From IMG/VR virus record IMGVR_UViG_3300035698_010479, positions 62,001-126,000 of that record: 64,000 nt of DNA; one strand, given 5' to 3'. The notes beneath the pieces are model-generated. The model was not told the DNA's origin and searched no databases. It saw nothing but the letters and a program-made list of their open reading frames with translations. Position 1 is the first letter of the stretch, and every line of letters starts with the position of its first letter. Made by a program: the position numbers and the translations under genes. Positions 163 to 49,534 of this stretch are shown here, piece after piece.

Positions 163-912
163 ATGCACTCACCGTTAAAATACTGTACTAAGGGTGTACC
201 ACTACCAAATTATTTAATTGACGGACCAGAGCGTGTTTTAAACGTTTCTGAAGCTAATGTGGAAGTAGTTTACGGAGGTGATGGTTCAGTACTTCGTGGA
301 GTACAAGGTATAGTAAAGAACAATGTACCAGACGTTCTAATACTTGGTATTAATACTGGACACGTTGGCTTCTTATCAAACGATATTAGTAAAGAACAAG
401 CATTAGCTTTCCTTACCAATCCTAATGAGGCCCTTATTGAGAAGCGTAATATGTTACGTATAAGCAATAATGATACTGTATGGTATGCACTTAATGAAAT
501 AGTAATTCAACCACTAAAAAGAGGACCATTATTTGAAACGCTGCTTAAAGTTGACAATGATGATTTAGTATATAAGGGAGATGGCTTGATAATTTCTACT
601 CCTTCTGGTAGTACTGCTTATAATCTATCTGCTGGAGGACCTATTATACATCCAAGTACCAACGTGCTTGGTATTACACCTATATGCCCATTTTCTCTCG
701 CTGCACGGCCTATTGTAGTACCGAATTCTGTAAAACTTCTTGTTAATACTTCTGCCGATGCTGAAATAACTATAGATGGTGTATCAGTGTTCGTTGGAGT
801 ACTAAAGAATATGTCGATAGATCTTGCAGCATTTACTATAAATTTAGTTAAGTTTGACTCGTTTTTTGAGGCAATACATAATAAACTTGGGTGGAACTAC
901 TCTATACGGTGA
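163..912 (+). CDS. nadK: NAD kinase
   Basis: GGDG, GINTGHVGFL, NE and GDGLIISTPSGSTAYNLSAGGP motifs of the NAD kinase family. Confidence 0.93.
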   Translation: MHSPLKYCTKGVPLPNYLIDGPERVLNVSEANVEVVYGGDGSVLRGVQGIVKNNVPDVLILGINTGHVGFLSNDISKEQALAFLTNPNEALIEKRNMLRISNNDTVWYALNEIVIQPLKRGPLFETLLKVDNDDLVYKGDGLIISTPSGSTAYNLSAGGPIIHPSTNVLGITPICPFSLAARPIVVPNSVKLLVNTSADAEITIDGVSVFVGVLKNMSIDLAAFTINLVKFDSFFEAIHNKLGWNYSIR

Positions 913-917
913 CTAGT

Positions 918-1373
918 ATGATACAACTTATAAACGAAGATATTCTTGGTAACTTAGATACAAATAAACAAAAAACAATTATTCTTCATGGGTGTAATTG
1001 TTTCCACACAATGGGTTCTGGTATTGCTAAATACTTAAGAGCCAAATTTCCAAAGGTTTACACAGTAGATATTACTACTACTAAACGTGGTGATAAATCA
1101 AAGCTTGGTACTTTTAGTACAGCAATCATTGAGGATAGATTTGTAATACTTAATTGTTATACACAATTCAGATATGGTAGAGATAACATCCTGTATGCTA
1201 ACTATGCAGCTATAGAAAAATGTTTTAGACAGGTGGCTTTGCAGTATGATAATTCATGGGAAGTACGGCTTCCAAAAATAGGGTGCGGATTGGCAGGTGG
1301 TGATTGGAATATTGTAGGGCCATTGTTGATGATGCATTTAAACAATCATAGTACTAAAGTTTATTATAAGTAA
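918..1373 (+). CDS. Macrodomain (ADP-ribose processing) protein, phage Tk.4-like
   Basis: HGCNCFHTMGSGIAKYL and PKIGCGLAGGDW motifs; likely start ATG 918 rather than 891. Confidence 0.88.
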   Translation: MIQLINEDILGNLDTNKQKTIILHGCNCFHTMGSGIAKYLRAKFPKVYTVDITTTKRGDKSKLGTFSTAIIEDRFVILNCYTQFRYGRDNILYANYAAIEKCFRQVALQYDNSWEVRLPKIGCGLAGGDWNIVGPLLMMHLNNHSTKVYYK

Positions 1374-1384
1374 GAGGTGTATAA

Positions 1385-1783
1385 ATGGGTTTATATTTGG
1401 AGCTTTACCATGGCAGAAAAGTACTTGACGTAGATATGAATGGTTGGGGTTTTCATGGTCCAATTATAGGGCCACTAGAGCATATAAGTATGACTTATAT
1501 GGATATACTACGTGTGTTCTGTACATCCAATGACGTGGCAAAAGAATGCGGATTTGAAGACAAAGAAGATGTGTGGTTGACACATAAAGAAGGCTGTGTT
1601 GAATTTCAAGGTAATTATTACGGTGATTGGTCTTTACAAATAATGACCGATGATAAAGTTAAACTATTAAGAGAAGAAGTAACAAGGGTAAATGCTATAC
1701 CTTATAATGTTGATAGTACTTTCATAGACAAAAATAAGAATCCACCTGAAACAATTAATGTCGCTAATATCAGAAGATTTTAA
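1385..1783 (+). CDS. hypothetical protein
   Basis: 132-aa ORF with GAGG SD, in operon context. Confidence 0.75.
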   Translation: MGLYLELYHGRKVLDVDMNGWGFHGPIIGPLEHISMTYMDILRVFCTSNDVAKECGFEDKEDVWLTHKEGCVEFQGNYYGDWSLQIMTDDKVKLLREEVTRVNAIPYNVDSTFIDKNKNPPETINVANIRRF

Positions 1784-1949
1784 AATTGACAAGCCTTGGG
1801 ACGTATTAAAAGTATACCCAGAAACAGCATGGCAAGTAATCAAAACTTTACATGATGAGAATATATCACTGAAAGAAGAAAAAGCCAAAACAGATAAGAT
1901 TATTCATAATTTAATTGCATCGCTAGAAGCAGAAGTTAAACTTTACTAA
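1758..1949 (+). CDS. hypothetical protein (short coiled coil)
   Basis: 63-aa ORF overlapping the previous gene. Confidence 0.6.
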   Translation: MSLISEDFKIDKPWDVLKVYPETAWQVIKTLHDENISLKEEKAKTDKIIHNLIASLEAEVKLY

Positions 1950-1959
1950 GGTTACTGTA

Positions 1960-2748
1960 ATGCTAAAAGAAATAAAAAAGAAGTCTTTTGCTAATGGTTG
2001 TGTATATTTAATGCACACAAAGGACGGCTACCCTATAGAAGTTACTGATACATTCCTACCTTTTTATACTAAAAATGCTATAGGTGTACATCAAAATTAT
2101 CTAAAAAATGATGATTTAGGAAGTAGAAAAGAGCGTTGGATGGTAGGTGTGTCTACAATGAGTGGTTGTCCAGTCGGTTGTAAGTTCTGTGCCACTGGTA
2201 CTATGAAAAAATGCAGGAACCTTACAGCGGAAGAAATTGTCGAGCAAGTTCAGTTTATTTGGGATAAGAACTTAGGCACATGGGTAGATGGCGCTCAAGA
2301 ATTTAAGATCAATTATACCCGCATGGGTGAACCTTTTTTAAACCTGGTCGAAGTAAAAAAGGCTATCAGTGTACTTTCCGAATACAACCCTAAAATACAT
2401 CATTATGTGTCAACTATTGGTGTTAAAGGGTCAGATTTTTCATGGATTAAGGGCAACATAACACTACAATTTTCTATTCATTCGTTTAAAGAAGAATACA
2501 GAGATTGGCTTATACCTTATAAACATAAAATGTCTTTGGAAGAGATTGGAAAAGTTAGGACTGGTAGTAATCTTAAAACTACACTCAATCTTACTTTGGC
2601 CCGCCCAGAAGATTTCGATATTGGCGTTCTTAAAAAGTATTTTGATCCTGATTATTTTTTTATAAAAATTTCCCCTATTAATACTAATGAAGTATCAGAA
2701 AGTAATGGTATGGGTAGTGGTATTATAAGTCAACATAATTTAATATAA
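1960..2748 (+). CDS. RlmN/Cfr-like radical SAM protein, core part lacking the C-terminal Cys segment
   Basis: STMSGCPVGCKFCAT (CxxxCxxC), RNLTAEEIVEQV, MGEP, STIG, SIH and KISPIN align with the RlmN core; ends before the xACGQL motif. Confidence 0.88.
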   Translation: MLKEIKKKSFANGCVYLMHTKDGYPIEVTDTFLPFYTKNAIGVHQNYLKNDDLGSRKERWMVGVSTMSGCPVGCKFCATGTMKKCRNLTAEEIVEQVQFIWDKNLGTWVDGAQEFKINYTRMGEPFLNLVEVKKAISVLSEYNPKIHHYVSTIGVKGSDFSWIKGNITLQFSIHSFKEEYRDWLIPYKHKMSLEEIGKVRTGSNLKTTLNLTLARPEDFDIGVLKKYFDPDYFFIKISPINTNEVSESNGMGSGIISQHNLI

Positions 2749-2762
2749 TAGGAGTTTACAAT

Positions 2763-3050
2763 ATGGCTATAAATATCGCAGCTGAGGTAGCTTTGCTTAA
2801 GAAGTTAAAACAAAGATTTGTTAATACTGACGCGTATCTAGAGTCAATTCAGGATATGTACGAGGAAGGTCTAATAACAGCTAAAGCATTCAGAGAAATA
2901 ATAAACGAATTAGCTAAACCAAAAATAACAAAGGGTAAATCAAATAGATTGGTACCTCAAAAAGTACTTAAATCTATAATCACAAAACAAACTGGTGTAC
3001 AGGAAATAGATCCATGTTCTCATGGTAACTTCACAAGAACATCATGTTAA
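2763..3050 (+). CDS. small protein ending in a Cx9C tail (possible radical SAM substrate or partner)
   Basis: 95 aa, SD AGGAG, C-terminus DPCSHGNFTRTSC; overlaps the next radical SAM gene. Confidence 0.7.
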   Translation: MAINIAAEVALLKKLKQRFVNTDAYLESIQDMYEEGLITAKAFREIINELAKPKITKGKSNRLVPQKVLKSIITKQTGVQEIDPCSHGNFTRTSC

Positions 3051-3928
3051 ACATTTCATTTATAAATAAACTTAATTTTAGGGAAAACAGCTGTGTTTTA
3101 AACAACACTAATGCTGAAAAAATACCACATAAATATGTGAATATCTATGTAAAAATTACAAGTAAGTGTAATGCTGATTGTAGATTTTGTGTGTATTGTA
3201 CTGACTTTAATAACAAAAAAGAAGTATTCAACTTCGTAAAGTTTGAAAAAATTCTTTTATATCTTGAAGCCAATAATATACACATACATAAGATATCTTT
3301 TACCGGAGGTGAACCATCACTATATTGTAAGAGTATTGAAAAATGTATGGTAAGTGTATTAAAATTGAAATATAAACCATTCATTGTTGTAAATTCTAAC
3401 GGTTTCAAGTTGGGCTTGTTACAAAAAATAAAGGGTATAGACAATATATCTTTATCTAGACACACTATAACAGATGAAGACAACTTCAAGTTATACGACA
3501 CACGCTCAGTTGCTTCATCAAATGACATAAGTAACGCTCAGCCAAATAAAATACACTTGACATGTAACCTTATTAAAGGATTTATAGACTCAGAGGAACG
3601 TATCATTGACTATCTTGAAAAAGCAGCATCTCTAAATGTATATGATGTAGGATTTGTAAGCTTGATGAAGGTAAATACATTCTGTAAAACAAATCATGTG
3701 GATTTTAACGATATAATTTTTAAAAGAAAAGATATAGTGTGTAATAAAGAATGGTCTAATTCCGATGTATGCAGATGTAAAAACTTTCTATACTTACCCA
3801 GTAAGGGTAATAAAGTTGTAAAATTTTATTCACGTTATAGATGTAAGAATGATGTTGACTCTAAAAGTAATTATGTATTTGATGGTAGTCATTTTAGAAG
3901 TAATTTTGGTGGTACAATAATCTATTAG
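3044..3928 (+). CDS. radical SAM protein of unknown function
   Basis: KITSKCNADCRFC (CxxxCxxC), SFTGGEP, VNSNG; extra C-terminal Cys (CRC). Confidence 0.88.
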   Translation: MLNISFINKLNFRENSCVLNNTNAEKIPHKYVNIYVKITSKCNADCRFCVYCTDFNNKKEVFNFVKFEKILLYLEANNIHIHKISFTGGEPSLYCKSIEKCMVSVLKLKYKPFIVVNSNGFKLGLLQKIKGIDNISLSRHTITDEDNFKLYDTRSVASSNDISNAQPNKIHLTCNLIKGFIDSEERIIDYLEKAASLNVYDVGFVSLMKVNTFCKTNHVDFNDIIFKRKDIVCNKEWSNSDVCRCKNFLYLPSKGNKVVKFYSRYRCKNDVDSKSNYVFDGSHFRSNFGGTIIY

Positions 3929-3937
3929 GAGAATATT

Positions 3938-4132
3938 ATGTCAGAAGAAGTTAAAAAACAAACCAGTAATGGTAAATTAGTAACAAAAGAAGAGTATATC
4001 AAGGAAGTAAAAGAAGAACTGATAAAACTTCAACTACAAGAAGCTGGATATGATTATGCTGTAGCTATAGCCACTGATGCTGAGATAAAAGCAGGTGCTG
4101 CTTGTGGTCAATTAGCTATCATAAACGAGTAG
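3938..4132 (+). CDS. stand-alone C-terminal segment of an RlmN-like enzyme (AACGQL peptide)
   Basis: LQEAGYDYAVAIATDAEIKAGAACGQLA matches the RlmN C-terminal helix/strand/Cys loop (E. coli ...[12 protein letters not shown]); has its own SD (AGGAG) and ATG. Confidence 0.8.
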   Translation: MSEEVKKQTSNGKLVTKEEYIKEVKEELIKLQLQEAGYDYAVAIATDAEIKAGAACGQLAIINE

Positions 4133-4136
4133 TAAT

Positions 4137-4460
4137 ATGAAAAAGGTGTATATATCATCAAAATATAGTGAAGGAGATAAAGAGGCAAACGTTCAAGCAC
4201 AGATAGATATAGGTAACATATTAATTGATAATGGTTTCAATCCGTTCGTACCGTTGCTATCACACTATCTGAATGCAGTTAAACCTAGATCTTACAATTA
4301 CTGGCTCGGTGCCCTCATAGAGTGGCTTAAAATATGTGATTGTTTACTACGTCTAGAAGGAAAAAGTCCAGGGGCAGATATGGAGGAGATACTCGCTAAA
4401 CGTCTAGGTATACCAATATTCTATTCAATGGAAGATTTACTTAAATATTATAAAAAATAG
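4137..4460 (+). CDS. DUF1937/DUF4406-like (nucleoside 2-deoxyribosyltransferase-like fold) protein
   Basis: KVYISSKYS, FNPFVP, CDCLLRLEGKSPGADME...GIPIFY pattern. Confidence 0.7.
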   Translation: MKKVYISSKYSEGDKEANVQAQIDIGNILIDNGFNPFVPLLSHYLNAVKPRSYNYWLGALIEWLKICDCLLRLEGKSPGADMEEILAKRLGIPIFYSMEDLLKYYKK

Positions 4461-4480
4461 GTATAAAGCAAGGAGGGACC

Positions 4481-5107
4481 ATGTTTAAATACCCAAAAAC
4501 GTATCACTTGACATGGTCGCCAGGAGTAACACATGACGATAAAATTATAAGTTCCTTAGATAACTTCATAGGTAAGCGTGTAATAGTGACCGAGAAATTA
4601 GATGGTGAATGTACTACTATCACAAAAGGAAATATACATGCCAGATCTATGGATTCAAAAGACCACGTGTCCAGACATTGGGTTAAAAGTCAATACGGAT
4701 ATTTGACTTACGCATTGAGAGAGCCTATTAAAATATGTGGTGAGAACGTGTTTGCTAAACATTCAATTGCATATGATAATCTAATTGGCTTCTTTTACGC
4801 TTTCTCTTTATGGGATGGTACTAAGTGCTTATCGTGGGATGACACGCTTGCAGAACTTGCTTTTCTTAATATACCACATGTACCAGTAATATATGATGGG
4901 CTGTGGGATGAATCGTATATAAGACATATTCCTCTTTTAAATACTGAGAAAGGTATTATGGAAGGGTATGTTGTTAGGTTGGCGGATGAATTTGAACTTA
5001 TTGAATTTAGTAACAGTGTGGCAAAATATGTAAGACCTAACCACGTGCAGACAGACGAACACTGGTTATACCAACCTATTATTAAAAATAAATTAATAGG
5101 AGATTAG
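4481..5107 (+). CDS. RNA ligase family nucleotidyltransferase
   Basis: KYPKTYHLTWSPG, motif I TEKLDGE, ICGEN, EGYVVR, VAKYVR. Confidence 0.85.
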   Translation: MFKYPKTYHLTWSPGVTHDDKIISSLDNFIGKRVIVTEKLDGECTTITKGNIHARSMDSKDHVSRHWVKSQYGYLTYALREPIKICGENVFAKHSIAYDNLIGFFYAFSLWDGTKCLSWDDTLAELAFLNIPHVPVIYDGLWDESYIRHIPLLNTEKGIMEGYVVRLADEFELIEFSNSVAKYVRPNHVQTDEHWLYQPIIKNKLIGD

Positions 5108-5331
5108 TGAAAAATACTGGGTACGTATATGAAGATTTTCATGACGTTGTTATAGAGGTACTTCTTTCTAGAAATACTATAAACAAAGAATATTTAACAG
5201 ACGATTTTGTCAGAGAAGTATATAATAAACTACCAAAAGATATAAAAGCTACTGCTATAACATGGGGTTGTTCTGACACAGTGTTTAGAGATAATGCTTT
5301 CACCTGGTTAAAAGAAAATTGGAGAAATTAA
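5107..5331 (+). CDS. hypothetical protein
   Basis: 74-aa ORF, GTG start coupled to the upstream stop, SD AGGAG. Confidence 0.65.
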   Translation: MKNTGYVYEDFHDVVIEVLLSRNTINKEYLTDDFVREVYNKLPKDIKATAITWGCSDTVFRDNAFTWLKENWRN

Positions 5332-6474
5332 ATGGAAAGACAGTTAGCATCTATACAAAAAATAGTAGATATACAACCAATAGTTGGTGCTGATAAAATT
5401 GAAGTTGTGTTTATTCTAGGCTGGCAGTGTGTTGCAAAGAAGAACGAGTTTAAAATTGGTGATCTCTGTGTATATTTTGAAATAGACTCCCAGTTACCAA
5501 AGCATATTATATTTGATTTTATGGCACATAGAAAATTCAGAGTCAAAACAATCAAGCTTAGAAAACAAATATCACAAGGATTAGCATTACCACTGTCGAT
5601 TCTATCTAATTTTACAAATAAAAATATAAATTCTTTCCGTGAAGGGGATGATGTATCAGAATTAATAGGTGTTACTAAATATGACCCTAGGCCACAGGAT
5701 GCTGACCCAGTTAGTACTAAAAAGCATAATCCTATTGTTAATTATTTAATGGATTACTTCTGGTTTAGGAAAGTATATAACCTTGTTATGCCTAAAAAAA
5801 CTAAAGGCAACTTTCCAGAATTCATTAAAAAAACTGATGAGACTCGTTTACAAAGTTATCCATTAGTGCTCGTAAAAAATATAGGAAGAAAGTTCTATCT
5901 TACCGAGAAATTGGATGGTAGTTCTGCGTCTTATTTTTTTAATAAAGCACTTGTTGGTAAAAGGTTTGGATTGTTTCCTATCGACAAGGGTAATGGCTTT
6001 GGCGTATGTTCTAGAAATATAAGACTTGTCACACAAGATAAAAGATATTGGTGGAAGTACGCTCTAGATAATAATATGGAAGAAAAAACTAGAACCATTT
6101 CTAAATGTTTAGACTGTAGTATCGCTATACAGGGTGAACTCGTTGGTCCTGGTATTCAGAAAAATAAATATTGTTTAACCGAACTGGACTTTTATTGTTT
6201 TAATTTATTCAATATAGACACAAATACATATTTATCTAAAGAGGATAAAGAAATTATCTGTGATCAGTTTAATATAAAACTTGTTCCTTGTGATGATACT
6301 ATCATCGAATTATCTACTGAGCATGATGTTGCATTTTTTGTTAACCTTTCAAAAAGGAAAAGTAAGCTAAATAAAAAGACCACTGCTGAAGGTATAGTAG
6401 CAAGGAGATTAACAGACGAAACGATAAGCTTTAAAGTAATAAATCCAGAATGGTTACTAAAAAATGATGAATAA
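5332..6474 (+). CDS. RNA ligase, DRB0094-like family
   Basis: N-terminal RQLASIQKIVDIQPIVGADKIEV domain, TEKLDGSS, IQGELVGPGIQKN, EGIV, SFKVIN. Confidence 0.9.
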   Translation: MERQLASIQKIVDIQPIVGADKIEVVFILGWQCVAKKNEFKIGDLCVYFEIDSQLPKHIIFDFMAHRKFRVKTIKLRKQISQGLALPLSILSNFTNKNINSFREGDDVSELIGVTKYDPRPQDADPVSTKKHNPIVNYLMDYFWFRKVYNLVMPKKTKGNFPEFIKKTDETRLQSYPLVLVKNIGRKFYLTEKLDGSSASYFFNKALVGKRFGLFPIDKGNGFGVCSRNIRLVTQDKRYWWKYALDNNMEEKTRTISKCLDCSIAIQGELVGPGIQKNKYCLTELDFYCFNLFNIDTNTYLSKEDKEIICDQFNIKLVPCDDTIIELSTEHDVAFFVNLSKRKSKLNKKTTAEGIVARRLTDETISFKVINPEWLLKNDE

Positions 6475-6754
6475 AAAAAGACAACCTATAATAGTTTGTG
6501 CCGCATTAAAAAAAGATGATATTATTATAGTTGGTCCAAGACATTTCGATGCATTTATGCATAAACAGATAATTGCTATAGTTGGTGAGGATAACCGTCG
6601 AAAACTAATTGACGCTGAACAAGGTTTTATAGATCAATACGGTACTTTTTGGAATCGCACAGATGCCATGATACTTGTTAGAGCTTCTGGACAACAATTA
6701 GATATGACTAGAAACGGATCAACCACGAAACTATTTAGTGAGGGTTTATATTAA
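6464..6754 (+). CDS. conserved phage hypothetical protein
   Basis: IVCAA...GPRH...EQGFIDQYG...LFSEGLY pattern common in phage small proteins. Confidence 0.75.
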   Translation: MMNKKRQPIIVCAALKKDDIIIVGPRHFDAFMHKQIIAIVGEDNRRKLIDAEQGFIDQYGTFWNRTDAMILVRASGQQLDMTRNGSTTKLFSEGLY

Positions 6755-18711: not shown

Positions 18712-18798
18712 CGGATAGGGAGGGATTTGAACCCTCGGTAGCTTTTAAACTACACCTGTTTAGCAGACAAGCACCATAGGCCACTCGGTCACCTATCC
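18712..18798 (-). tRNA. tRNA-Ser(GCT)
   Basis: GGATAGG acceptor, D loop with GG, CT-GCT-AA loop, long variable arm, GGTTCAAATCC; no encoded CCA. Confidence 0.92.
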
Positions 18799-18809
18799 AT
18801 TAACTAAAG

Positions 18810-19100
18810 TTAATATTTAATTTTATGTAATTTTTTATGACAAGCACTACATACAGTGATCAAATTTTTAATAGGCTCGTTCCATGGGTACTTCTTTGTA
18901 TACTTTAAATGGTGGAGATGCAATGTAGTTTCTGTATCACCACATTTCATGCACTTCCAACCGTCTCTTTCAAACATTTTCAAACGCTTCTTTTGCCATT
19001 TTGGATGTTGGAGGGCTGCAGCATACTGCTCTTTTGAAAGCTTTTTATATGGCTTATTTATCTTTTTAGTTATTTTTTTACTAATAATTTTATTCTTCAT
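18810..19100 (-). CDS. HNH endonuclease
   Basis: WQKKRLKMFERDGWKCMKCG, LHLHH, NLITVCSACH. Confidence 0.88.
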   Translation of the reverse strand: MKNKIISKKITKKINKPYKKLSKEQYAAALQHPKWQKKRLKMFERDGWKCMKCGDTETTLHLHHLKYTKKYPWNEPIKNLITVCSACHKKLHKIKY

Positions 19101-19411
19101 ACGACTTCTAGCTCATTAGTATAAATTTCAAAAAAGCATCTATTACTATTAGTCAAATGTAGCATAGTAAAATCTCTACCTTTGAAAATCCAAGGCTCCT
19201 TTAGAGTACTTTGAAAAGCATTAGTCTTATTTGGATATGTATTATTAATAATATCTTCTAAACAAGTAGAAGTGTAAACTGTGGTTCCTTTTATACACCA
19301 AAAATATGTTTCAGCAATATAAATACAACCTACCGTATTAAACATAGTGTCACAGTTGAAATATTTAAATAGTTTATCTCTGGCTCCAATATAATCATCA
19401 AATAGATCCAT
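19097..19411 (-). CDS. hypothetical protein
   Basis: 104-aa ORF. Confidence 0.65.
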   Translation of the reverse strand: MDLFDDYIGARDKLFKYFNCDTMFNTVGCIYIAETYFWCIKGTTVYTSTCLEDIINNTYPNKTNAFQSTLKEPWIFKGRDFTMLHLTNSNRCFFEIYTNELEVV

Positions 19412-19422
19412 AAATTACCTCA

Positions 19423-19812
19423 TTATAATAATTTTAAATGTCCAGTAATGGTGTCTATAACCTCAGATTCTGCTGGACCGATAGCTAAACATGTGCGTGT
19501 AGGAATACCGTTAAACTCTGTTTTTCCAGAGTCTGTTATAAGCGAACAAATAAGATTAGCACTCTTTGCCTTATAATGTATAGTTAATAATTCTTCTTCA
19601 GAGTCCACACTTACACATACCTTAGTAAAGGAATTTTCTAACCAACTCAAGGTTTCGTCAGAAAACCAAGGAGGTACATCAGCTGTAACACATGTGGTAT
19701 AATCTAATTCTTTTAAAATATTAGCTAGGCTGGCATGGCAGCCTTGTGCCACCATTTTTCCTTTACGCATGTTTAAATCTTTACGCATGACTATAACTTG
19801 CTTGGTATTCAT
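19423..19812 (-). CDS. pth2: peptidyl-tRNA hydrolase type 2
   Basis: KQVIVMRKDLNMRKGKMVAQGCHAS, KVCVSV, DSGKTEF, TCLAIGP, ITGHLKLL. Confidence 0.92.
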   Translation of the reverse strand: MNTKQVIVMRKDLNMRKGKMVAQGCHASLANILKELDYTTCVTADVPPWFSDETLSWLENSFTKVCVSVDSEEELLTIHYKAKSANLICSLITDSGKTEFNGIPTRTCLAIGPAESEVIDTITGHLKLL

Positions 19813-20033
19813 TCAAATATCTCCATGGATATACTTACTCCTGAAATAATACTTTCTGCATACCTGTGCCCTAAAGTACCTACAGACTGCATCTCTATGT
19901 TTATACTTTGATCAGCATGGGTAATACCAGTATCTAGCTTAAACTGTTCAAATATATTAGATACTACTATAAGTATATCATGCTCCGCCTGTTTTTTAAG
20001 ATTATTAAGCTGTTTAATATTTAATTCACACAT
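19809..20033 (-). CDS. hypothetical protein
   Basis: 74-aa ORF. Confidence 0.6.
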   Translation of the reverse strand: MCELNIKQLNNLKKQAEHDILIVVSNIFEQFKLDTGITHADQSINIEMQSVGTLGHRYAESIISGVSISMEIFE

Positions 20034-20043
20034 AACATAAACC

Positions 20044-20220
20044 TCATCTATGGTAAGTAACGTCCGTAAGCTTATCTTTTATCTTCTTGATGGTTGCTTT
20101 CTTAATAACAAACCCATGTCCTGAGCACCTATCACAGCTAAAAAGTCTATCATCCATATTGATTTCACCTGTACCGTTACACATATAACATATTGTAAAA
20201 CTTTCTTTTATTTTTAACAT
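20044..20220 (-). CDS. DnaJ-type zinc-finger small protein
   Basis: CYMCNGTG, CDRCSGHG; true start ATG 20220 after AGGAG (the upstream part of the listed ORF is the tRNA). Confidence 0.7.
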   Translation of the reverse strand: MLKIKESFTICYMCNGTGEINMDDRLFSCDRCSGHGFVIKKATIKKIKDKLTDVTYHR

Positions 20221-20246
20221 TATTATACTCCTTATATTAATATGTT

Positions 20247-20321
20247 TGTTCCTAGTGAGAATCGAACTCACAACGAAACGCAGGTTTAGAATCTGCCGCT
20301 CTACCACTGAGCTATAGGAAC
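20247..20321 (-). tRNA. amber suppressor tRNA (anticodon CUA)
   Basis: GTTCCTA-TA-GCTC AGTGGTA GAGC-G-GCAGA TTCTAAA CCTGC-GTTTCGTT-GTGAG TTCGATT CTCAC-TAGGAAC-A. Confidence 0.85.
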
Positions 20322-20323
20322 AT

Positions 20324-20355
20324 ATGAGGCTTATATTGTTAGGTATAAGCCTCAT
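20324..20355 (-). terminator. 12-bp hairpin immediately 5' of the suppressor tRNA
   Basis: ATGAGGCTTATA / TATAAGCCTCAT inverted repeat. Confidence 0.55.
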
Positions 20356-20359
20356 GTTT

Positions 20360-20605
20360 TTAAACCTCCAATTCCTCACCCATAATAAGTGTAACAACAT
20401 AACGCTGTTTCTTCATAAAATCAACATAACTTAGTGCTTCATTTAATAATGTGAACTCCTTAAAATCTTTACCAGAACTATCATTACAGTATGAGTCAAC
20501 GCTATATACATAATAACAATGGTGTACTTCGTCACCCCAGCCCTGAACTATCTTGTTAAGTTCTCTAATCTTATCCTTTTTATTTTCATCCATAATTATA
20601 ATCAA
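20360..20605 (-). CDS. hypothetical protein
   Basis: 81-aa ORF. Confidence 0.6.
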   Translation of the reverse strand: MIIIMDENKKDKIRELNKIVQGWGDEVHHCYYVYSVDSYCNDSSGKDFKEFTLLNEALSYVDFMKKQRYVVTLIMGEELEV

Positions 20606-20607
20606 CC

Positions 20608-20904
20608 TTAAAGTAGACGCATACTCTCGAAGAATTCATTACCACCCAAACTTGCTATAGCAGTAAGTTGATTTCCTATATCAGGTTCTTTAAAACTTAC
20701 ATGTGGTATATTACTCCAGTTTAGATCATTTGTCAAGCGCTTTAATTCACCCTCATTATTTACTTTGAGATAGACCAACGTACCGTTATCCCAGTTTGTA
20801 AGTCTGTTATTTAATAAGTATTCAGCCAAAGCATGACCAGCTTGAACGGCTTGCTGAGACTTAGATAGATCTTTACGTGTTATTACATATAGTTTATGCT
20901 GCAT
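20608..20904 (-). CDS. Pth2-fold phage protein (peptidyl-tRNA hydrolase-like)
   Basis: KLYVITRKDL, QAVQAGHA, FKEPDIGNQLTAIA. Confidence 0.72.
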   Translation of the reverse strand: MQHKLYVITRKDLSKSQQAVQAGHALAEYLLNNRLTNWDNGTLVYLKVNNEGELKRLTNDLNWSNIPHVSFKEPDIGNQLTAIASLGGNEFFESMRLL

Positions 20905-21217
20905 TTGTCACAAGCCCCTTCCCCTTCTTAAGGTTTTCCCAATAACGCTCAATTGGTCTCATTATTGTGTCAACATAATATGAATTAGGTCTATTGTCTA
21001 TAGCGCAGTTCCGTTCTATCTCCTCCATAGACCTGCCACGTATAAGACAGTAAGCTATATGATGATGTCTATATTCATAACGTAAATCATCAAGTCCAGC
21101 GACAACACCGTAAGGAGAGCCCTTACGTTTAGATTTCTTATGTCTAATATCAACTGCTGCTTCTTTTAGTGCTACTTTCAAATCCTTTAAAGTTTCAATC
21201 TTAGTATTTATTTTCAT
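20894..21217 (-). CDS. conserved phage hypothetical protein
   Basis: YRHHHIAYCLIRGR...EEIE pattern. Confidence 0.7.
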   Translation of the reverse strand: MKINTKIETLKDLKVALKEAAVDIRHKKSKRKGSPYGVVAGLDDLRYEYRHHHIAYCLIRGRSMEEIERNCAIDNRPNSYYVDTIMRPIERYWENLKKGKGLVTNAA

Positions 21218-21363
21218 AATCTTAATCTCCGTATTTAATTTATTAGTATAATAATAATAATAATAGTAGTAGTAATTATATAGTACTAATAAATTTACGG
21301 TGACCTTGCTACCTAGACAAATCCTGATTTATACATAGGCTACCCTCCACTAGTTAATTGTTA

Positions 21364-21666
21364 TTACTTATTATGCCACTTATTCCACATAAATAACCAT
21401 TTATCACATTTATTTTGAGCTATGGCTCTTATATCGTCTTCGGTAGCTTCTGGATAATTTACCCTAATCATGTCTAAAGCACAAATTATAACGTCCACAG
21501 CTTCTCCTATAATACCATCCTTTCCTGGTAACTTACCACAATGTCCTGTCTGTATATTTACTTCTTCTGCTAATTCTCCTACCTCTGACATTAATGAAGC
21601 CATTATATTATGTGACGTTCTTCCTGGTGTAACTGTGTCCGAAACTTTAAAAACTGTTTTAAGCAT
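21364..21666 (-). CDS. MazG-like NTP pyrophosphohydrolase
   Basis: LMSEVGELAEE...GEAVDVII ExxE/ExxD pattern. Confidence 0.78.
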   Translation of the reverse strand: MLKTVFKVSDTVTPGRTSHNIMASLMSEVGELAEEVNIQTGHCGKLPGKDGIIGEAVDVIICALDMIRVNYPEATEDDIRAIAQNKCDKWLFMWNKWHNK

Positions 21667-21863
21667 AATCTTCCGCCGTATTTAAAATCATAACTAGTAA
21701 TATCTTCTTCTGTGAGATACCTTTTAATACGTTCCCCACAAACTATACAATGCAAATCAAAACCGGAGGTATCATTTAAAGGTACCTCCCTATATAGCCC
21801 ACCACAATTATTTAGACAAACTGCATCTGTCATATCTTTTATATTATTAAACGGCTTAATCAT
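21603..21863 (-). CDS. hypothetical protein with Cys pairs
   Basis: CLNNCGG...CIVCG. Confidence 0.55.
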   Translation of the reverse strand: MIKPFNNIKDMTDAVCLNNCGGLYREVPLNDTSGFDLHCIVCGERIKRYLTEEDITSYDFKYGGRLCLKQFLKFRTQLHQEERHII

Positions 21864-21923
21864 TTAACACTTTCCCCCGCCTTTTCCTTTACCACCCTTC
21901 TTATCTTTATCTGTTTTAGCCAA
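21864..21923 (-). CDS. 19-aa Lys/Gly-rich micropeptide
   Basis: AAGGAG, 6-nt spacer, TTG; MAKTDKDKKGGKGKGGGKC; stop directly abuts the next ATG. Confidence 0.55.
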   Translation of the reverse strand: MAKTDKDKKGGKGKGGGKC

Positions 21924-21941
21924 AACGTTCTCCTTTAATTA

Positions 21942-22559
21942 TTAATATTTTATAAGTACTACCGCCAGTACACCAGAGGAATCATATATATGATCCTTAT
22001 TTAAAACTGTTTGTAAAGTATAACCATATTTTTCAAATAAGTCAAGCCACCATTGCTTAGAATGTATTTGAATATGTGTTTTATCATTTTTACTTACGTC
22101 CAGTACAAAGTCTTCACCTTCTACGGCTGCTACCGGTATACGTACTATAAGCTGTGTTGCGTTTACTATATCACCAATAATAGTGTGTAGTGAAAAGGTA
22201 GGTATATGTTCGAGTACATCTAAAAATAGTAGTATATCAAATGGCCCAGAAACTAAATCTGGGTTATAATGATGTAATATACCTCCTAGATTATACTGGT
22301 CAATACCAAATTCTACAGCCCAATAACTTATATCAGTACCTTCACATAGTACATTACGGTTATTTAGTTCATATATTAAACCACCTGTAGCTGCCCCATA
22401 GTCCAGTACGCTTTTGTTCTTTAAGTAAGGAAGTAAATCATCTGCCAATCCTGAAAATTTCTTCTCTCTATAATCTTCATAATTACTTATGGTACTTCTC
22501 ACATAATAATTTTTGTCAAATAGCATACTATGACCTTTAAATAAATTTGGAGTGGCCAC
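21942..22559 (-). CDS. class I SAM-dependent methyltransferase
   Basis: VLDYGAATG, GTDIS, DVLEHI. Confidence 0.88.
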   Translation of the reverse strand: MATPNLFKGHSMLFDKNYYVRSTISNYEDYREKKFSGLADDLLPYLKNKSVLDYGAATGGLIYELNNRNVLCEGTDISYWAVEFGIDQYNLGGILHHYNPDLVSGPFDILLFLDVLEHIPTFSLHTIIGDIVNATQLIVRIPVAAVEGEDFVLDVSKNDKTHIQIHSKQWWLDLFEKYGYTLQTVLNKDHIYDSSGVLAVVLIKY

Positions 22560-23475
22560 ATGGCATAATTACTTGCTCAATAAGGTCATTGTGTTCATTG
22601 AAGAAACATTTACCTTCTTTACAGTTACAAGTATCAAAAGCGGTATCTTTTTTATATGTGTTCTCCCAAGTTTTAATTATATCATCAATATGACATAATG
22701 TAAAGTCAGAATTAAATTTTCTGTCAATTAGAGGGTTAGCACTACAATGATAGACATAGCCATCGGCATTAACAAATGGTTTTATTCTGCCCATCCAACA
22801 TTTATTTGGTACTGTATATTTCTTTTGTTGAAAAAAGAATTTTGGGTACTTATCTAAATAAGGTTGGATCATGTCTGTTGATTTATTTATGTCTTCAATA
22901 GATAGGCAATTAGGTACTATACGAACATAAGTAGCTTTATATTTATCTGCATATGCTGAAATTTTATCTAGCTGTTTTTCTGTTGATAAATCAGTAATTA
23001 CGTAAGAAAAACCTAAAACAACATTTGAAGGTATATTAATATCTATATCTTCAACGTAGTCTAAACTATTAAGACTTATTCTTAACCAAGTTAGTCTACT
23101 AAGATTTTTATAACTAACGTTATCTAGTTTTACACCATTAGTAATCATACCGATACCAGAGTAATTATAAGCAGCAAATTCTATAATATCATTAATGTGC
23201 TTATACATTGTTGGATCGCCTCCTCCGGTAAACTCAACAGTCTTTGCACCAAGAGTTTTAAAATCTGTAAGTACCTTGATAGACTGTTCTAAAGAAAGTT
23301 CATCAGCTTTATTTCGATTTGCTACAGAACACATTACGCAATTTAAATTACATTTATTAGTGGGGGCTAATTGAATACTGATAGGTCTAAAATAACCTTG
23401 CTGCATCTCCTTTAATCTATCCAGATTATGAAGTAATTTATTTTGTGTGCTTGTGTACAGCTGTTCTTTATTCAT
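22537..23475 (-). CDS. radical SAM protein with SPASM/twitch-like C-terminus
   Basis: CNLNCVMC, FTGGGDP, ITNG, CW...NADGYVYHC...CNCKEGKC. Confidence 0.9.
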   Translation of the reverse strand: MNKEQLYTSTQNKLLHNLDRLKEMQQGYFRPISIQLAPTNKCNLNCVMCSVANRNKADELSLEQSIKVLTDFKTLGAKTVEFTGGGDPTMYKHINDIIEFAAYNYSGIGMITNGVKLDNVSYKNLSRLTWLRISLNSLDYVEDIDINIPSNVVLGFSYVITDLSTEKQLDKISAYADKYKATYVRIVPNCLSIEDINKSTDMIQPYLDKYPKFFFQQKKYTVPNKCWMGRIKPFVNADGYVYHCSANPLIDRKFNSDFTLCHIDDIIKTWENTYKKDTAFDTCNCKEGKCFFNEHNDLIEQVIMPCGHSKFI

Positions 23476-24190
23476 ATATGTAATCCTCTATTAGTAAGTT
23501 TTTATTCCATTGTAAATTAGCGAAAGCCTTATCATGCCACTCATAACTGCAACAGGTACCCATGTCTCTTCCTCGATGGTTAGTTCTAGATAATGTAGGG
23601 AAAATTTCATAAAGATTTTCTTTCTTGCAATGAGCTGCAACAGCCCAATCCCACCCGTAAGAATTAAAGTACTCCTTAGCCAAATCATCATAGAACCAAT
23701 TAGGCTTAAATACCCTCTCGAAATTTTCACTAAATGTACACCAGCCTAATCCCGTAAAACTACCACATCTGGACACAAGTTTATTAGGTGTTACTAAGGT
23801 ACTATCATAATTAAATAAACCATAGCTATTGAATTTAAGTGGATCATTTTTAAAAGTCTTTCTGTAAAATTCGGCAAGTAATAGTGCATCTGGGCCAACA
23901 TGTAAATCATCATCCATATGACAATTAAAAGTACTACCTGAATTAAAAGCCAGTTCTACCGCTGAAAACTGATTTAATCTATGGTTTTTTCTTGTTTTAT
24001 TTACTTCAACTGTTATAGAAGCAAAACCGTAGTTACTGTTTTTTAAAACATTTTTTATTTCGTTTGTTTTTTCAGAAGGGTCTATACATATAAAAAAATG
24101 CCAATCACTAGTGTCACATTTAGCAATATCAATCAAGGTCTCTTGTAAATAATCTGGTCTGTTATAAGCAGTCATACTTAGTGTTTTCAT
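23468..24190 (-). CDS. GT-A fold glycosyltransferase (family 2-like)
   Basis: TAYNRPDYL, HMDDD (DxD), GLGW, GWDW. Confidence 0.78.
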   Translation of the reverse strand: MKTLSMTAYNRPDYLQETLIDIAKCDTSDWHFFICIDPSEKTNEIKNVLKNSNYGFASITVEVNKTRKNHRLNQFSAVELAFNSGSTFNCHMDDDLHVGPDALLLAEFYRKTFKNDPLKFNSYGLFNYDSTLVTPNKLVSRCGSFTGLGWCTFSENFERVFKPNWFYDDLAKEYFNSYGWDWAVAAHCKKENLYEIFPTLSRTNHRGRDMGTCCSYEWHDKAFANLQWNKNLLIEDYIYE

Positions 24191-24199
24191 ATAAACTCC

Positions 24200-24583
24200 T
24201 TAATATCTAGTGCCATTTAAATCTTTTAATTCAATAGTCATTGTATGAAAAATATATTTAGAAATGTTATGAGACACTTCATCTATTACTATCTTAGCAA
24301 TATCTTCCCTAGAGTTATTATGGTATTCTAATGGTATATCCCCATGTATACATTTATATAAGATGCTCTTACCAATATGAGTTATACTAAAAGATGTAGC
24401 TACAAATATTTCTATAGCTGTACTTTTTATTGTAAAAGCATCAAGTATTGCGTTTTGAGCTTTAGTTAATAACTCACTGTAGATACGTATACTGTCATCT
24501 GTTGGGGCCTTATGTTCATTAATAGTTTTAGCATAAGGTACATGAACTTCACGAGTAGCGCCTAGTTGATAAGTATCAAACAT
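24200..24583 (-). CDS. hypothetical protein
   Basis: Start ATG 24583 after AAGGAG (the listed upstream extension overlaps the tRNA). Confidence 0.65.
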   Translation of the reverse strand: MFDTYQLGATREVHVPYAKTINEHKAPTDDSIRIYSELLTKAQNAILDAFTIKSTAIEIFVATSFSITHIGKSILYKCIHGDIPLEYHNNSREDIAKIVIDEVSHNISKYIFHTMTIELKDLNGTRY

Positions 24584-24607
24584 ATAATTCTCCTTAATTC
24601 TTATGAA

Positions 24608-24693
24608 TGGGTAGTGATGGAATCGAACCATATGCCCTGTGGGAATAGATTTACAGTCTATCGTAGGACCATCCTACCTTATATACACCACCC
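24608..24693 (-). tRNA. tRNA-Tyr(GTA), atypical (extra ~7 nt between acceptor and D stems)
   Basis: GGGTGGT acceptor / ACTACCC, GTAG-GATGGTC-CTAC D arm, ATAGA CTGTAAA TCTAT, variable arm, GGTTCGATTCC. Confidence 0.75.
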
Positions 24694-24698
24694 AGAGT

Positions 24699-25142
24699 TT
24701 ATTCACACCAGTTTTTTTCTTTTGTCCCACCATTATACTTAACGGCTAGGCCTTTGTCAAGTAAAATAGTAGCTAAGTCACCTTCGGCTGTTAAAACTTC
24801 TGCGACAATTCTAAAATATTTTCCTCGTCTAGTATTAAGAAGTGATACCTTGGTATGATCTCGCAGTATAACATATACAGCCTCTTTAGCCGCTAATGCA
24901 AGTTGATGCTCCTTTTCACATTTACTACGCATCTCAGGTGTATCAATACCAAATACACGTACTGATATTTTATAGCCAAATAACTCTGGTATGTCATTTA
25001 TATTTACAGTTAAAGTATCTCCATCATAATTACTAATAACTTCTACATCATAAAAATTTTCATATGTTTTTTCTGACGCATTACTATTATCATAACTACA
25101 AAAAGTACATAACAATAAAAATGATACTAATAGGCTTTTCAT
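24699..25142 (-). CDS. thermonuclease (SNase-like) with signal peptide
   Basis: YDGDT, VRVFGIDTPE, GKYFRIVA, GLAVKYNGG. Confidence 0.88.
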   Translation of the reverse strand: MKSLLVSFLLLCTFCSYDNSNASEKTYENFYDVEVISNYDGDTLTVNINDIPELFGYKISVRVFGIDTPEMRSKCEKEHQLALAAKEAVYVILRDHTKVSLLNTRRGKYFRIVAEVLTAEGDLATILLDKGLAVKYNGGTKEKNWCE

Positions 25143-25194
25143 ATAAACTCCTTACTTATTCTAAAGTCGTTGATTACTACACTGGTAATATATT

Positions 25195-25277
25195 CGGAGA
25201 GCGTAGGATTCGAACCCACGGGGCTTTCACCCTTTAGTTTTCAAGACTAACGTCATAAACCACTCGACCAGCTCTCC
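25195..25277 (-). tRNA. tRNA-Ser(TGA)
   Basis: GGAGAGC acceptor, TTAGT CTTGAAA ACTAA, variable arm, GGTTCGAATCC. Confidence 0.92.
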
Positions 25278-25284
25278 AGTTATT

Positions 25285-25356
25285 CGGTCCTACGGGTAGT
25301 CGAAACCCGATACTGAGCTTGAAAAGCTCATGTCCTAACCATTAGACGATAGGACC
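25285..25356 (-). tRNA. tRNA-Glu(TTC)
   Basis: GGTCCTA acceptor, GTCTAATGGTTAGGAC D arm, TGAGC TTTTCAA GCTCA. Confidence 0.9.
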
Positions 25357-25403
25357 TAGTTAAACTATTATAACATATTTAAAAATAATGTAAACTTAAT
25401 ATT

Positions 25404-25475
25404 TGCATCCAGGAGGAATTGAACCTCCGGCGCGAGACTCTTCAGGACTCCGCTCTACCACTGAGCTACAGATGC
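25404..25475 (-). tRNA. tRNA-Phe(GAA)
   Basis: GCATCTG acceptor, GCTCAGTGGTAGAGC, GAGTC CTGAAGA GTCTC (one T-T mismatch), GGTTCAATTCC. Confidence 0.85.
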
Positions 25476-25482
25476 TTTAGTT

Positions 25483-25555
25483 TGGTCTCAGATGGATTTG
25501 AACCACCGACTTATGAGTTATCAGCTCATTGCTCTACCAACTGAGCTATAAGACC
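25483..25555 (-). tRNA. tRNA-Ile(GAT)
   Basis: GGTCTTA acceptor, GCTCAGTTGGTAGAGC, ATGAG CTGATAA CTCAT, GGTTCAAATCC. Confidence 0.92.
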
Positions 25556-42862: not shown

Positions 42863-43096
42863 TTAATCTCCTATATAAGAAAATTCACAACAAGGAAATT
42901 TTCTTCCTTGTTCATCTAAAGGTTCTTTCCAATTATCTAAATCTAGATTATCAGGATTACCGTCGGTTGGCTCCATATTACAACTACATCCTCTTGGTAC
43001 ACATATATCGCAATAGAAATCATTTATCTGCTCACCAGAGTAACTTGGTAAATATAACCATACAGCTACTTTACCACAATCACATTTACCTGTCAT
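42863..43096 (-). CDS. Cys-rich small protein
   Basis: CDCG, CDIC, GCSC, PCC. Confidence 0.7.
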   Translation of the reverse strand: MTGKCDCGKVAVWLYLPSYSGEQINDFYCDICVPRGCSCNMEPTDGNPDNLDLDNWKEPLDEQGRKFPCCEFSYIGD

Positions 43097-44046
43097 TATT
43101 TATTTAATACCCTAGATAAAATAAATTGACCACAAGCTGACATAATTTCCTCTCCTGGTGAAAATTGTACTTTTATGTTTTTGTGCTTATCATATAAAAG
43201 TTCCACCAACTTAGCAAAATTCTTAGCTTCTTCAAAACTTGTACCTTCGCATTTATTAAATCTAAGTAAACGTAACTCAATATTATTAAATACTGTTAGT
43301 AAACTTAATAAGTAATTTATATCATTTATGGAGTCGTTAACACCATCAAAAAACATATGATGTAGTATAACATCAATACCATCTTGTTCTAAATACTTAA
43401 GGTAGTCTATGGCAGTAAATGTATCAACAGAACTAGGAATCAATGTGTTCCTTATAGAATCTTCTGCACTGTGCAGGGAGTAAAATACCCTAAATGGTTG
43501 TCTTTTACTCCCCTTTGTATACTTTCTAGCTGGGTTTAAATGTGTTGTCCATACACACTCAGAAAGTAACTTAATATAATCTATATCAGTATTTGGAATT
43601 TTAGGTAATGTCGTAGCAATGTCTACCCCATCTATACCAGCAGACATATCAAAACTCTGTATACACTGTATAATATCTTCCGTAACTTCATACACAAGTT
43701 CAAGGTCTAAAAAGCCATCTCCCATACCCATCCAAGATAATTTAGTGTACATGCTTCGTAATTCAGGCCTAATCTTTAACTCAGCATCAAGTGCATCTAG
43801 CACGTTTCTAGTAATAGCCATAGCAGACAGTTTATGGTAATGGCATTTTTTAACTGTTAGATAACAGAACTTGCAACCTATAGGACAACCTACGGATGTA
43901 CTTATAAAAATATTATATTTATTACCTACACTTCCGTAACCTCCACAGCCAACTTCTCCTGGTGGTATGGTCTTTATAGCCGTTTCAGAACCATCATCGT
44001 GTACATATTTTGATACGTGTCCATTTTTAGCTCTATACACCTCCAT
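43096..44046 (-). CDS. RlmN/Cfr-like radical SAM protein (full length)
   Basis: ISTSVGCPIGCKFC, WMGMGD, YSLHS, GVND, FNK, GEEIMSACGQF. Confidence 0.88.
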   Translation of the reverse strand: MEVYRAKNGHVSKYVHDDGSETAIKTIPPGEVGCGGYGSVGNKYNIFISTSVGCPIGCKFCYLTVKKCHYHKLSAMAITRNVLDALDAELKIRPELRSMYTKLSWMGMGDGFLDLELVYEVTEDIIQCIQSFDMSAGIDGVDIATTLPKIPNTDIDYIKLLSECVWTTHLNPARKYTKGSKRQPFRVFYSLHSAEDSIRNTLIPSSVDTFTAIDYLKYLEQDGIDVILHHMFFDGVNDSINDINYLLSLLTVFNNIELRLLRFNKCEGTSFEEAKNFAKLVELLYDKHKNIKVQFSPGEEIMSACGQFILSRVLNK

Positions 44047-49163: not shown

Positions 49164-49225
49164 AATTAATAAGTGTTATAGCATAGTAGAGTTAGTTAAA
49201 TATAGGGATGTAATTAATAGTATTA

Positions 49226-49534
49226 TTAAAGTTCCATCAAGTCATCTTCAAGAGTTAAATCTTTAGCCTGTACAATTCCTCTATTAGATGTGTAAAACTT
49301 ATGATCTGGTGTACATTCTATAGAGAGCCCACTACCTAGGTTTAAGGTTAGTGTTTTTACAGGTATACCCGCTTCACGAGCAAACACATCCACTATTGGC
49401 TTTAATTCATCAAGATTAGTACTTGTATTTCTGGATAAAGCCATGAAATCTTCCCCATCTAAAATGCGCTTTATAATATCCTTAATCAGTATATTGCCTT
49501 TATCTGTAAGTATATGATTTTCATCAGTAAAACA
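49226..49534 (-). mobile_element. split intein N-terminal fragment (102 aa)
   Basis: Block A CFTDENHILT, block B IECTPDHKFYT, ending AKDLTLEDDLMEL-stop. Confidence 0.88.

Follow-up and report, generated by a model that had tools for sequence, protein, structure and literature searches.

How could an RlmN/Cfr-like radical S-adenosylmethionine (SAM) enzyme work if its chain ends before the segment that holds the methyl-carrying cysteine? The question is raised by a locus in a 64,000-nucleotide stretch of DNA (hereafter the window; positions 62,001 to 126,000 of the IMG/VR virus record IMGVR_UViG_3300035698_010479), in which one open reading frame (ORF1) encodes the core of such an enzyme and a short separate gene (ORF4), beyond two intervening genes, encodes a peptide with the missing cysteine loop. 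RlmN is the methyl synthase of 23S rRNA m2A2503 and tRNA m2A37, Cfr makes m8A2503, and both are class A radical SAM methylases in which the methyl is carried by a cysteine, C355 in RlmN and C338 in Cfr. To our knowledge, an RlmN/Cfr-type enzyme is known only as a single chain. We propose that ORF1 and ORF4 are probably the two subunits of a single radical SAM enzyme, whose RlmN/Cfr-type gene was divided by fission. The features of the locus are as follows.

1960-2748, plus strand: ORF1, the proposed large subunit, an RlmN/Cfr-like radical SAM core of 262 amino acids starting with ATG (Pfam, NCBIfam, PDB search, AF2/Foldseek).
2750-2754, plus strand: AGGAG ribosome-binding site of ORF2, directly 3' of the ORF1 TAA TAG (read from the sequence; the ORF2 ATG is at 2763).
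2763-3050, plus strand: ORF2, a small protein of 95 amino acids, optional at the locus and partner of ORF3 (counterpart genes lie upstream of ORF3-like genes).
3044-3928, plus strand: ORF3, a MoaA-like radical SAM enzyme of 294 amino acids, an optional accessory (Pfam, NCBIfam, AF2/Foldseek).
3927-3931, plus strand: AGGAG ribosome-binding site of ORF4, overlapping the ORF3 TAG stop, 6 nt before the ATG.
3938-4132, plus strand: ORF4, the proposed small subunit, 64 amino acids with its own Shine-Dalgarno sequence and ATG and an AACGQLA loop (RlmN-tail homology).

A first-pass annotation, made from the letters of the window, had given the coordinates of ORF1 and ORF4 and the translation signals of ORF4, and these were confirmed. 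ORF1 stops with TAA (2746-2748), followed in frame by TAG (2749-2751) to form a double stop, and ORF4 ends in ...AGYDYAVAIATDAEIKAGAACGQLAIINE (the end is also given as ...AGAACGQLAIINE). The RlmN/Cfr motifs that had been reported ahead of a clean TAA, before the C-terminal segment, were all found in ORF1: CPVGCKFC (CX3CX2C, residues 70-77), TRMGEP, FSIHS and KISPIN. ORF1 matched Pfam Radical_SAM (PF04055) at 7e-11; its top NCBIfam matches were all RlmN or Cfr models, and its sequence matches in the PDB were all Cfr (9p0p) or RlmN (4pl1/5hr6/3rf9). The match to the RlmN model TIGR00048 (E 4.8e-20) covered only model positions 101-244 of 355 and scored 71.8 bits against a cut-off of 290, so that the equivalog level was not reached, and the Cfr models of NCBIfam gave 52-57 bits against cut-offs of 468-550. 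The AlphaFold2 (AF2) model of ORF1 (predicted local distance difference test (pLDDT) score 76, predicted template modelling (pTM) score 0.79) has the full set of six barrel strands (E59-64 to E233-238) and a disordered tail (residues 239-262), and this disordered end is the point where fused relatives run on into their tail. Foldseek returned 6fz6, two chains of RlmN 3rf9 and Cfr 9p0p as the top four matches (E 1e-10 to 3e-7), while the fifth (E 7e-3) was more than four orders of magnitude weaker. The N-terminal helical RNA-binding domain is absent from ORF1, as the hhalign alignment starts at RlmN residue 112, and residues 1-64 of ORF1 matched no Pfam domain. The Cys loop is also absent from the ORF1 polypeptide and is supplied in trans by ORF4 (Cys56). 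Thus, the nearest relatives of ORF1 by sequence and fold are RlmN and Cfr, yet ORF1 is not an RlmN.

Gly63 of ORF1, seven residues before the first cluster cysteine, occupies the position of C118 in RlmN and aligns to the C118A residue of 4pl1. This Gly is invariant in two of our alignments (A1 and A3) and is found in nearly all representatives of the split clade described below. Class A catalysis depends on a pair of conserved cysteines, one of which, C118 (C105 in Cfr), cannot be spared when the crosslink between enzyme and RNA is resolved; it probably serves as the base that starts fragmentation, and RlmN mutated at C118 is caught in its crosslink to RNA (PMC9692996). With Gly at the C118 position and without the N-terminal RNA-binding domain, the chemistry of ORF1 is therefore not canonical RlmN chemistry. 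Both features were absent from the first-pass annotation, whose description of a class A system stands for the RlmN/Cfr-like core and the Cys loop in trans, while its class A mechanism is not simply transferable in view of C118, the N-terminal domain and the family score (71.8 against 290 bits).

Where did the lost C-terminal segment go? The last ~37 residues of ORF4 correspond to the C-terminal helix, strand and Cys loop of RlmN, with Cys56 equivalent to C355. An alignment of 24 diverse peptides, from which a profile was built, has ten invariant columns, including A55-C56-G57-Q58, and beyond the motif the sequence varies and is largely acidic. Using hhalign, the profile was placed on residues 329-360 of E. 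coli RlmN (AACGQLA, C355; P 6.4e-4), so that the E. coli segment cited at first pass is a real counterpart. It was also placed on residues 294-321 of the fused relative P0283 (E 2.4e-5, probability 75%), while the core profile aligned to residues 19-268 of the same protein (E 2e-28). In a joint MAFFT alignment the conserved parts of the peptides fell on the tail of another fused relative, P0282; the core ends, which MAFFT misplaced, were matched by eye to ...GLLRETDVL of P0282, just upstream of the tail. By comparison with P0282, the break falls precisely where the core stops and the peptide begins. Purifying selection acts on the peptide gene: among 74 distinct gene versions the median ratio of nonsynonymous to synonymous substitution rates (dN/dS) was ~0.1, and nucleotide identity at codon positions 1/2/3 was 0.78/0.88/0.39.

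The first-pass reading would fall if homologues were always fused and the split were peculiar to this assembly. Instead, 122 of 126 related phage and metagenome-assembled genome (MAG) loci have, downstream of the core and in the same orientation, a motif-bearing peptide gene of 38-98 codons. The peptide gene is directly adjacent in 48 loci, is separated by other genes or a short spacer in 73 (by a spacer of 37-59 nt only in three of these), and overlaps the core end by 17 nt in one. Each peptide gene has its own start codon. The separate peptides are typically 39-68 residues long, and those of the adjacent type have 39 residues, all of RlmN-tail sequence. The three best matches among cultured phages all show the split: Kehishuvirus 'tikkala' of Bacteroides has a 43-residue peptide gene 2 nt after the core, Moorella phage MTATph1 has a 40-residue peptide gene 15 nt after it, and Yersinia phage P778 has one gene between the two. 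The pair is also present in Pectobacterium phage Arno18 and Vibrio phage D479; the small gene of D479 (L138:3303-3584) is a 93-residue ORF with two tandem helix-strand-Cys-loop modules, the only tandem among more than 170 loci scanned. In the window and the Moorella phage, the peptides are 64% identical and the enzymes 43%, and the closest relative of the window, locus L005, is 76% identical.

The distribution of the system is wide: it occurs in thousands of metagenomic proteins and in cultured phages of Bacteroides, Vibrio, Pectobacterium, Yersinia and Moorella. The best 120 of 2512 database homologues of the core all have 259-287 residues and are thus tail-less. IMG/VR holds 253 contigs with relatives of the core, abundant human-gut phages included, and 43 of 185,579 species genomes have one, mostly on MAG contigs. 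A locus search with the single sequence returned only the source contig, and an alignment was needed to reach the relatives; a megablast of 1500-6500 against 50,697 phage records gave no match. Our literature searches turned up no account of an RlmN-like system that is split or phage-borne.

Two other causes of the split were considered and rejected. An intron or split intein is not indicated, since no Rfam intron family was found in or beside the gap and no Hint/Intein_splicing domain was matched by Pfam in ORF1, ORF2, ORF3 or ORF4; the first-pass statement that the gap has no such signatures was therefore correct. Stop-codon reassignment was rejected because all three stops end the core gene across lineages (TGA in 59, TAA in 56 and TAG in 11 of the 126 loci) and the peptides start on their own. 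Taken together, the core and peptide recur far beyond chance and are a conserved, selected two-gene arrangement, with two genes as the minimal system. The claim that the missing Cys loop sits on a separate gene is thus upheld, with the fused relatives marking the break.

To place the split among the fused forms, we took 100 of the 7443 relatives found in a full HMMER scan of 1.84 billion representatives and built a tree rooted on E. coli RlmN. Proteins without C118 formed a clade of 58 (Shimodaira-Hasegawa (SH)-like support 99), inside which the tail-less proteins were one clade of 33 (SH-like support 90). On this tree the split clade is nested among fused forms, and the split is read as a derived fission. 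The loss of C118 came before the split, because the fused sister enzymes also lack it. P0282 and P0283 share the C118-less clade with the split clade and are among its closest fused relatives. P0282 is fused in the standard genetic code, has Thr at the C118 position and a tail ...AACGQALE, and was used as the clean fused example. P0283 (L085:201-1214) was set aside for its non-standard code: it has more than 10 in-frame TGA codons and is readable only with TGA as Trp, and so belongs to a recoded organism or phage. Other fused C118-less relatives are found in Bacteroides phage Versailles and in a bacterial 'SNCGQ' clade. On the metagenome contigs of this clade (L134, L135, L136), the fused RlmN-like protein is the last of a conserved three-gene array, preceded by an isochorismatase-family protein and a pyridine-nucleotide disulfide oxidoreductase.

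The window itself has a fused RlmN/Cfr-like paralogue (43096-44046, minus strand; 316 residues) with a ...SACGQF loop and Phe at the C118 position, matching TIGR00048 at E 4.3e-20, below the cut-off. With this fused paralogue in the same window, the split is not an effect of gene calling or assembly. Fused mini-RlmN proteins with both cysteines occur in other phages (Salmonella Arash, Vibrio 166E36-1, Stenotrophomonas BUCTxx99). The peptide module has also been joined in other ways. P0253 (L086:67-2154; 695 residues) is a permuted fusion in three parts: a peptide-like module (...GAACGNLA...) at the N-terminus, an RlmN-like core whose C118 position is Asp, and another radical SAM domain. The stop codon of an ORF3-like enzyme is gone in L006:6127-7119 (330 residues), so that the frame continues into the peptide gene, whose Met is retained. 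The module is thus N-terminal in P0253, after an ORF3-like enzyme in L006 and in tandem in D479, and therefore behaves as a self-contained docking unit. That the peptide might be exchangeable, as suggested at first pass, has the D479 tandem as its single hint.

Within the tail-less clade, 14 proteins with Gly at the C118 position form a 'RKIGVSL..GC.YC' group. We asked whether this group was also split and rejected the idea, as the helix and strand are kept and the Cys loop is simply lacking; in L181:2132-2971 and L090:798-1619, no Cys loop was found in cis or as a nearby gene. L181, the sole locus of the group with readable flanks, adjoins the cellular genes for pyruvate kinase and GreA.

How might the two proteins work together? 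In the proposed enzyme, the 262-residue core would supply the [4Fe-4S]/SAM barrel, and the helix and beta-strand of ORF4 would dock as the missing last barrel element, so that the AACGQL loop would bring its invariant cysteine to lie over the SAM site. As C355 does in RlmN, the peptide cysteine would take a methyl from one SAM; the 5'-deoxyadenosyl radical from a second SAM would abstract a hydrogen from the methylated cysteine, and the resulting S-CH2 radical would add to an sp2 carbon of the target. The complex, the S-methylation, the radical chemistry and the target are thus inferred. With the C118 base replaced by Gly, release of the adduct must differ from that in RlmN and Cfr. The fused C118-less relatives argue that some adduct-resolving route exists, and the pyridine-nucleotide disulfide oxidoreductase beside the bacterial ones may be a hint to it. 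As the core has no RNA-binding N-terminal domain, the target need not be rRNA or tRNA, and an adenine-type base, whether in a nucleic acid or in a nucleotide, would be the simplest assumption.

Several observations weigh against a two-subunit RlmN-like enzyme. Without C118, an RlmN-like catalytic cycle cannot close as known (PMC9692996). Searched against the PDB with hmmsearch, the 24-peptide profile gave chance matches only and no RlmN or Cfr, phmmer of ORF4 against the PDB likewise gave chance matches and no RlmN, and the hhalign probability of the peptide profile with E. coli RlmN was only 28%. Since HMMER alone finds no link, the case for homology of the peptide to RlmN is built on motif, collinearity and fused intermediates. 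Gene neighbourhoods were also inconsistent, save for a loose association with nicotinamide adenine dinucleotide (NAD) salvage: genes for Nudix proteins, nicotinate/nicotinamide phosphoribosyltransferase (NAPRT/NAMPT) and NadE recur beside the core in other lineages, NAD kinase and a macro domain belong to the same recurrent theme, and the best match of the recurrent Nudix protein is the ADP-ribose (ADPR)-responsive repressor NtrR. Together with the RNA ligases of the window, these neighbours fit an early 'host takeover' island; the substrate is not thereby identified.

The genes between the two halves bear on how the split is to be understood. ORF2 has a helical N-terminal part and ends in ...DPCSHGNFTRTSC (a Cys, nine residues and a terminal Cys); it matched no Pfam, PHROG or NCBIfam family, and its counterparts in other phages, found directly before ORF3-like genes, have nothing in common but the C-terminal ending [DG][PS]C-x(6-12)-C. 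ORF3 matched Pfam Radical_SAM (3.9e-9) and Fer4_12, with CX3CX2C at 42-49; its NCBIfam matches to MoaA (1.5e-11; 43.8 bits against a cut-off of 284) and viperin (8.5e-11) were both far below cut-off. The AF2 model of ORF3 (pLDDT 91.8) was best matched in Foldseek by MoaA 2fb2/1tv7 (E 1e-10, template modelling (TM) score 0.63, 293 columns), then by viperin-like proteins, SuiB and BlsE. Four further cysteines (C17, C174, C243, C245) are invariant in the family, which suggests an auxiliary cluster, and the C243-x-C245 spacing seems unlike that of MoaA. The ORF3 family has 113 proteins in 5.8 billion, largely on contigs with the core family.

The first-pass annotation took the four genes as one operon. 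The conserved unit is smaller, and ORF2 and ORF3 are an optional module nested between the subunit genes: about a dozen loci have an ORF2+ORF3-type pair between the core and peptide genes, and in L076 the pair follows the peptide gene. Seeding the scan with ORF3, we found a small protein ending in C-x(5-14)-C directly upstream in 25 of 39 loci and a core within 6 kb in only 21 of the 39. The pair thus also turns up where neither flank has a core within 6 kb. This independent occurrence favours the view that the inserts are hot-spot cargo. Other contents support the same view: the abundant gut lineage and many others have a different MoaA/viperin-like radical SAM enzyme and a small class I methyltransferase at the same site, lineage L007 has a GIY-YIG/NUMOD1 endonuclease between core and peptide, and L005 has only a 68-residue ORF there, so that at least four contents are known, small ORFs included.

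From these contents comes the alternative that survives best, which we regard as possible but less probable: a mobile element cut the gene once, the pieces reassemble as an enzyme equivalent to the fused relatives, and the inserts are unrelated cargo, gathered at a hot spot of recombination or homing with conserved sequence on its flanks. The likelihood given to it overlaps that of the two-subunit enzyme. In its favour, P0235, a metagenomic split-clade core of 601 residues, has an intein with a LAGLIDADG endonuclease exactly at the third cysteine of CX3CX2C, and the ribonucleotide reductase gene of the window is also split, with intein halves. Against unrelated cargo, P0253 joins peptide module, core and second radical SAM domain in one chain, and L006 fuses an ORF3-like enzyme to the peptide. 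Moreover, ORF3 relatives of at least 34% identity are nearly always beside a core, and radical SAM cargo is far above a random sample of phage genes (16, 16 and 16 of 63 lineages). The enrichment and the fusions favour the inserts as accessory steps of one pathway.

A second alternative, which we consider unlikely, is that the peptide is consumed: it would stay covalently linked to its target through the methylene bridge, and the core would be reused with a fresh peptide. The invariant Gly at the C118 position agrees with this, given that RlmN mutated at C118 traps its crosslink to RNA (PMC9692996). So do the strong AGGAG of the peptide gene, which is last in its unit, and the two tandem modules of the D479 ORF, though one core holds one tail at a time. 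This tandem, however, is a single case among the loci scanned, and the fused sisters (P0282, the 'SNCGQ' clade and the window paralogue) also lack C118. They would then be single-use whole enzymes, which argues for an alternative resolving route. In the event, itself improbable, that a 4-7 kDa peptide is tied as a one-carbon carrier to an adenine-type target (host or phage nucleic acid, or an adenine nucleotide), phages would have radical-SAM-driven peptide tagging, and the nested radical SAM/methyltransferase modules would process the adduct further.

It is somewhat less likely still that the peptide is the substrate, modified by a core that would have become a peptide-modifying enzyme out of the self-methylation of the RlmN tail, and tailored by the nested enzymes into a final product, as in clusters for ribosomally synthesized and post-translationally modified peptides (RiPPs). 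A short peptide gene, radical SAM genes and a methyltransferase do resemble such a cluster in layout, the core is without nucleic-acid-binding additions and the resolving cysteine, and the variable, mostly acidic residues after the peptide motif would also agree. The conserved part of the peptide, on the other hand, is a structural helix, strand and loop of the enzyme and not a leader with a variable core, and in the Moorella phage comparison conservation is higher in the peptide than in the enzyme. The same tail is also present in fused forms, and among the neighbouring genes none for a protease or for export recurs. ORF2 and ORF3 were themselves considered as a RiPP precursor and its radical SAM maturase: a small gene does precede the enzyme, and Pfam matched neither a SPASM domain nor a peptide-recognition (RRE) domain in them. 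The idea of a broken RlmN gene followed by a chance ORF has practically no probability left, as nothing beyond the stop codon before the tail speaks for it, and it is excluded by the conservation of the locus, the use of all three stops, the separate starts and the purifying selection on the peptide gene. Regardless of how the inserts came to the site, ORF1 and ORF4 as two subunits of one enzyme is the reading we prefer.

The window is part of a 228-kb phage contig in IMG/VR, is AT-rich, and encodes a DNA polymerase, a ribonucleotide reductase, a clamp loader, baseplate genes and six tRNAs. The locus lies in tightly packed plus-strand genes from 163 to ~7600. Upstream of it (163-1373, plus strand) are an NAD kinase and a macro-domain protein, and downstream (4137-6474, plus strand) are a DUF7768/deoxyribosyltransferase-like protein and two RNA ligases. 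A scan for promoters and terminators gave a yield not above the shuffled expectation. An Rfam gathering search of the whole window found the six tRNAs (18712-25555, minus strand; four clustered at 25195-25555). A fourth radical SAM gene of the window (22537-23475, minus strand) encodes a MoaA-like protein of 312 residues and lies between a class I methyltransferase-like gene (21942-22559) and a 240-residue ORF without a family match (23468-24190). The large subunit of ribonucleotide reductase is in two ORFs within 46421-50482 (minus strand), possibly through a split or disrupted intein: the N-terminal piece (49226-50482) ends in the N-terminal splicing half of an intein, the C-terminal piece is at 46421-48148, and a 342-residue ORF without a family (48135-49163) lies between them.

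How does the split enzyme compare with known systems? Phage genes split by mobile elements include the T4 topoisomerase genes 39/60 and nrdA of Aeromonas phage Aeh1, which was cut by mobE. Like these, the phage enzyme is encoded in two separately translated pieces that would have to reassemble, and a homing endonuclease in the gap of L007 and a split nrdA in the same window recall them further. Unlike them, the mobile element is gone in most lineages, the small piece of 39-68 residues is the catalytic loop itself, and the split is old, spanning hosts of several bacterial phyla. The split nrdA of the window also differs from the ORF1/ORF4 break in carrying intein halves.

Small proteins are paired with radical SAM enzymes in RiPP maturation, as in MftC with MftA, and cysteines are used once as donors in the Ada/Ogt alkyltransferases and yeast THI4. 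Our system is like these in having a short cysteine-bearing polypeptide beside a radical SAM enzyme, with cysteine use that may be stoichiometric. It is unlike the RiPP pairs in that the small protein corresponds by homology to a piece of the enzyme's own structure, and neither a leader/core organisation nor a peptide-recognition or SPASM domain was detected. The fused C118-less proteins (P0282/P0283, Versailles, the window paralogue and 'SNCGQ') are closer: they also have no N-terminal domain, have lost C118 and keep the Cys loop, but they are single polypeptides.

RlmN and Cfr themselves remain the best match of the core by sequence and fold, with the CX3CX2C, GEP and S-x-H motifs in common and the AACGQL cysteine on a C-terminal helix-strand-loop. 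In contrast to them, the phage system has its Cys loop on a separate protein, Gly in place of C118/C105, no N-terminal helical RNA-binding domain and scores far below the family cut-offs, and it is phage-borne. Class A enzymes are defined by two cysteines on one chain; here the carrier cysteine has moved to a small protein and the resolving cysteine is gone. By this comparison, class A-like chemistry with a cysteine in trans and without a resolving cysteine would be a variant of known chemistry. It points to a closing of the catalytic cycle that is not the textbook one, or to a deliberate non-closing, and flags a putative modification made by many phages during infection. The system also offers a natural setting in which the carrier step can be studied with a synthetic peptide.

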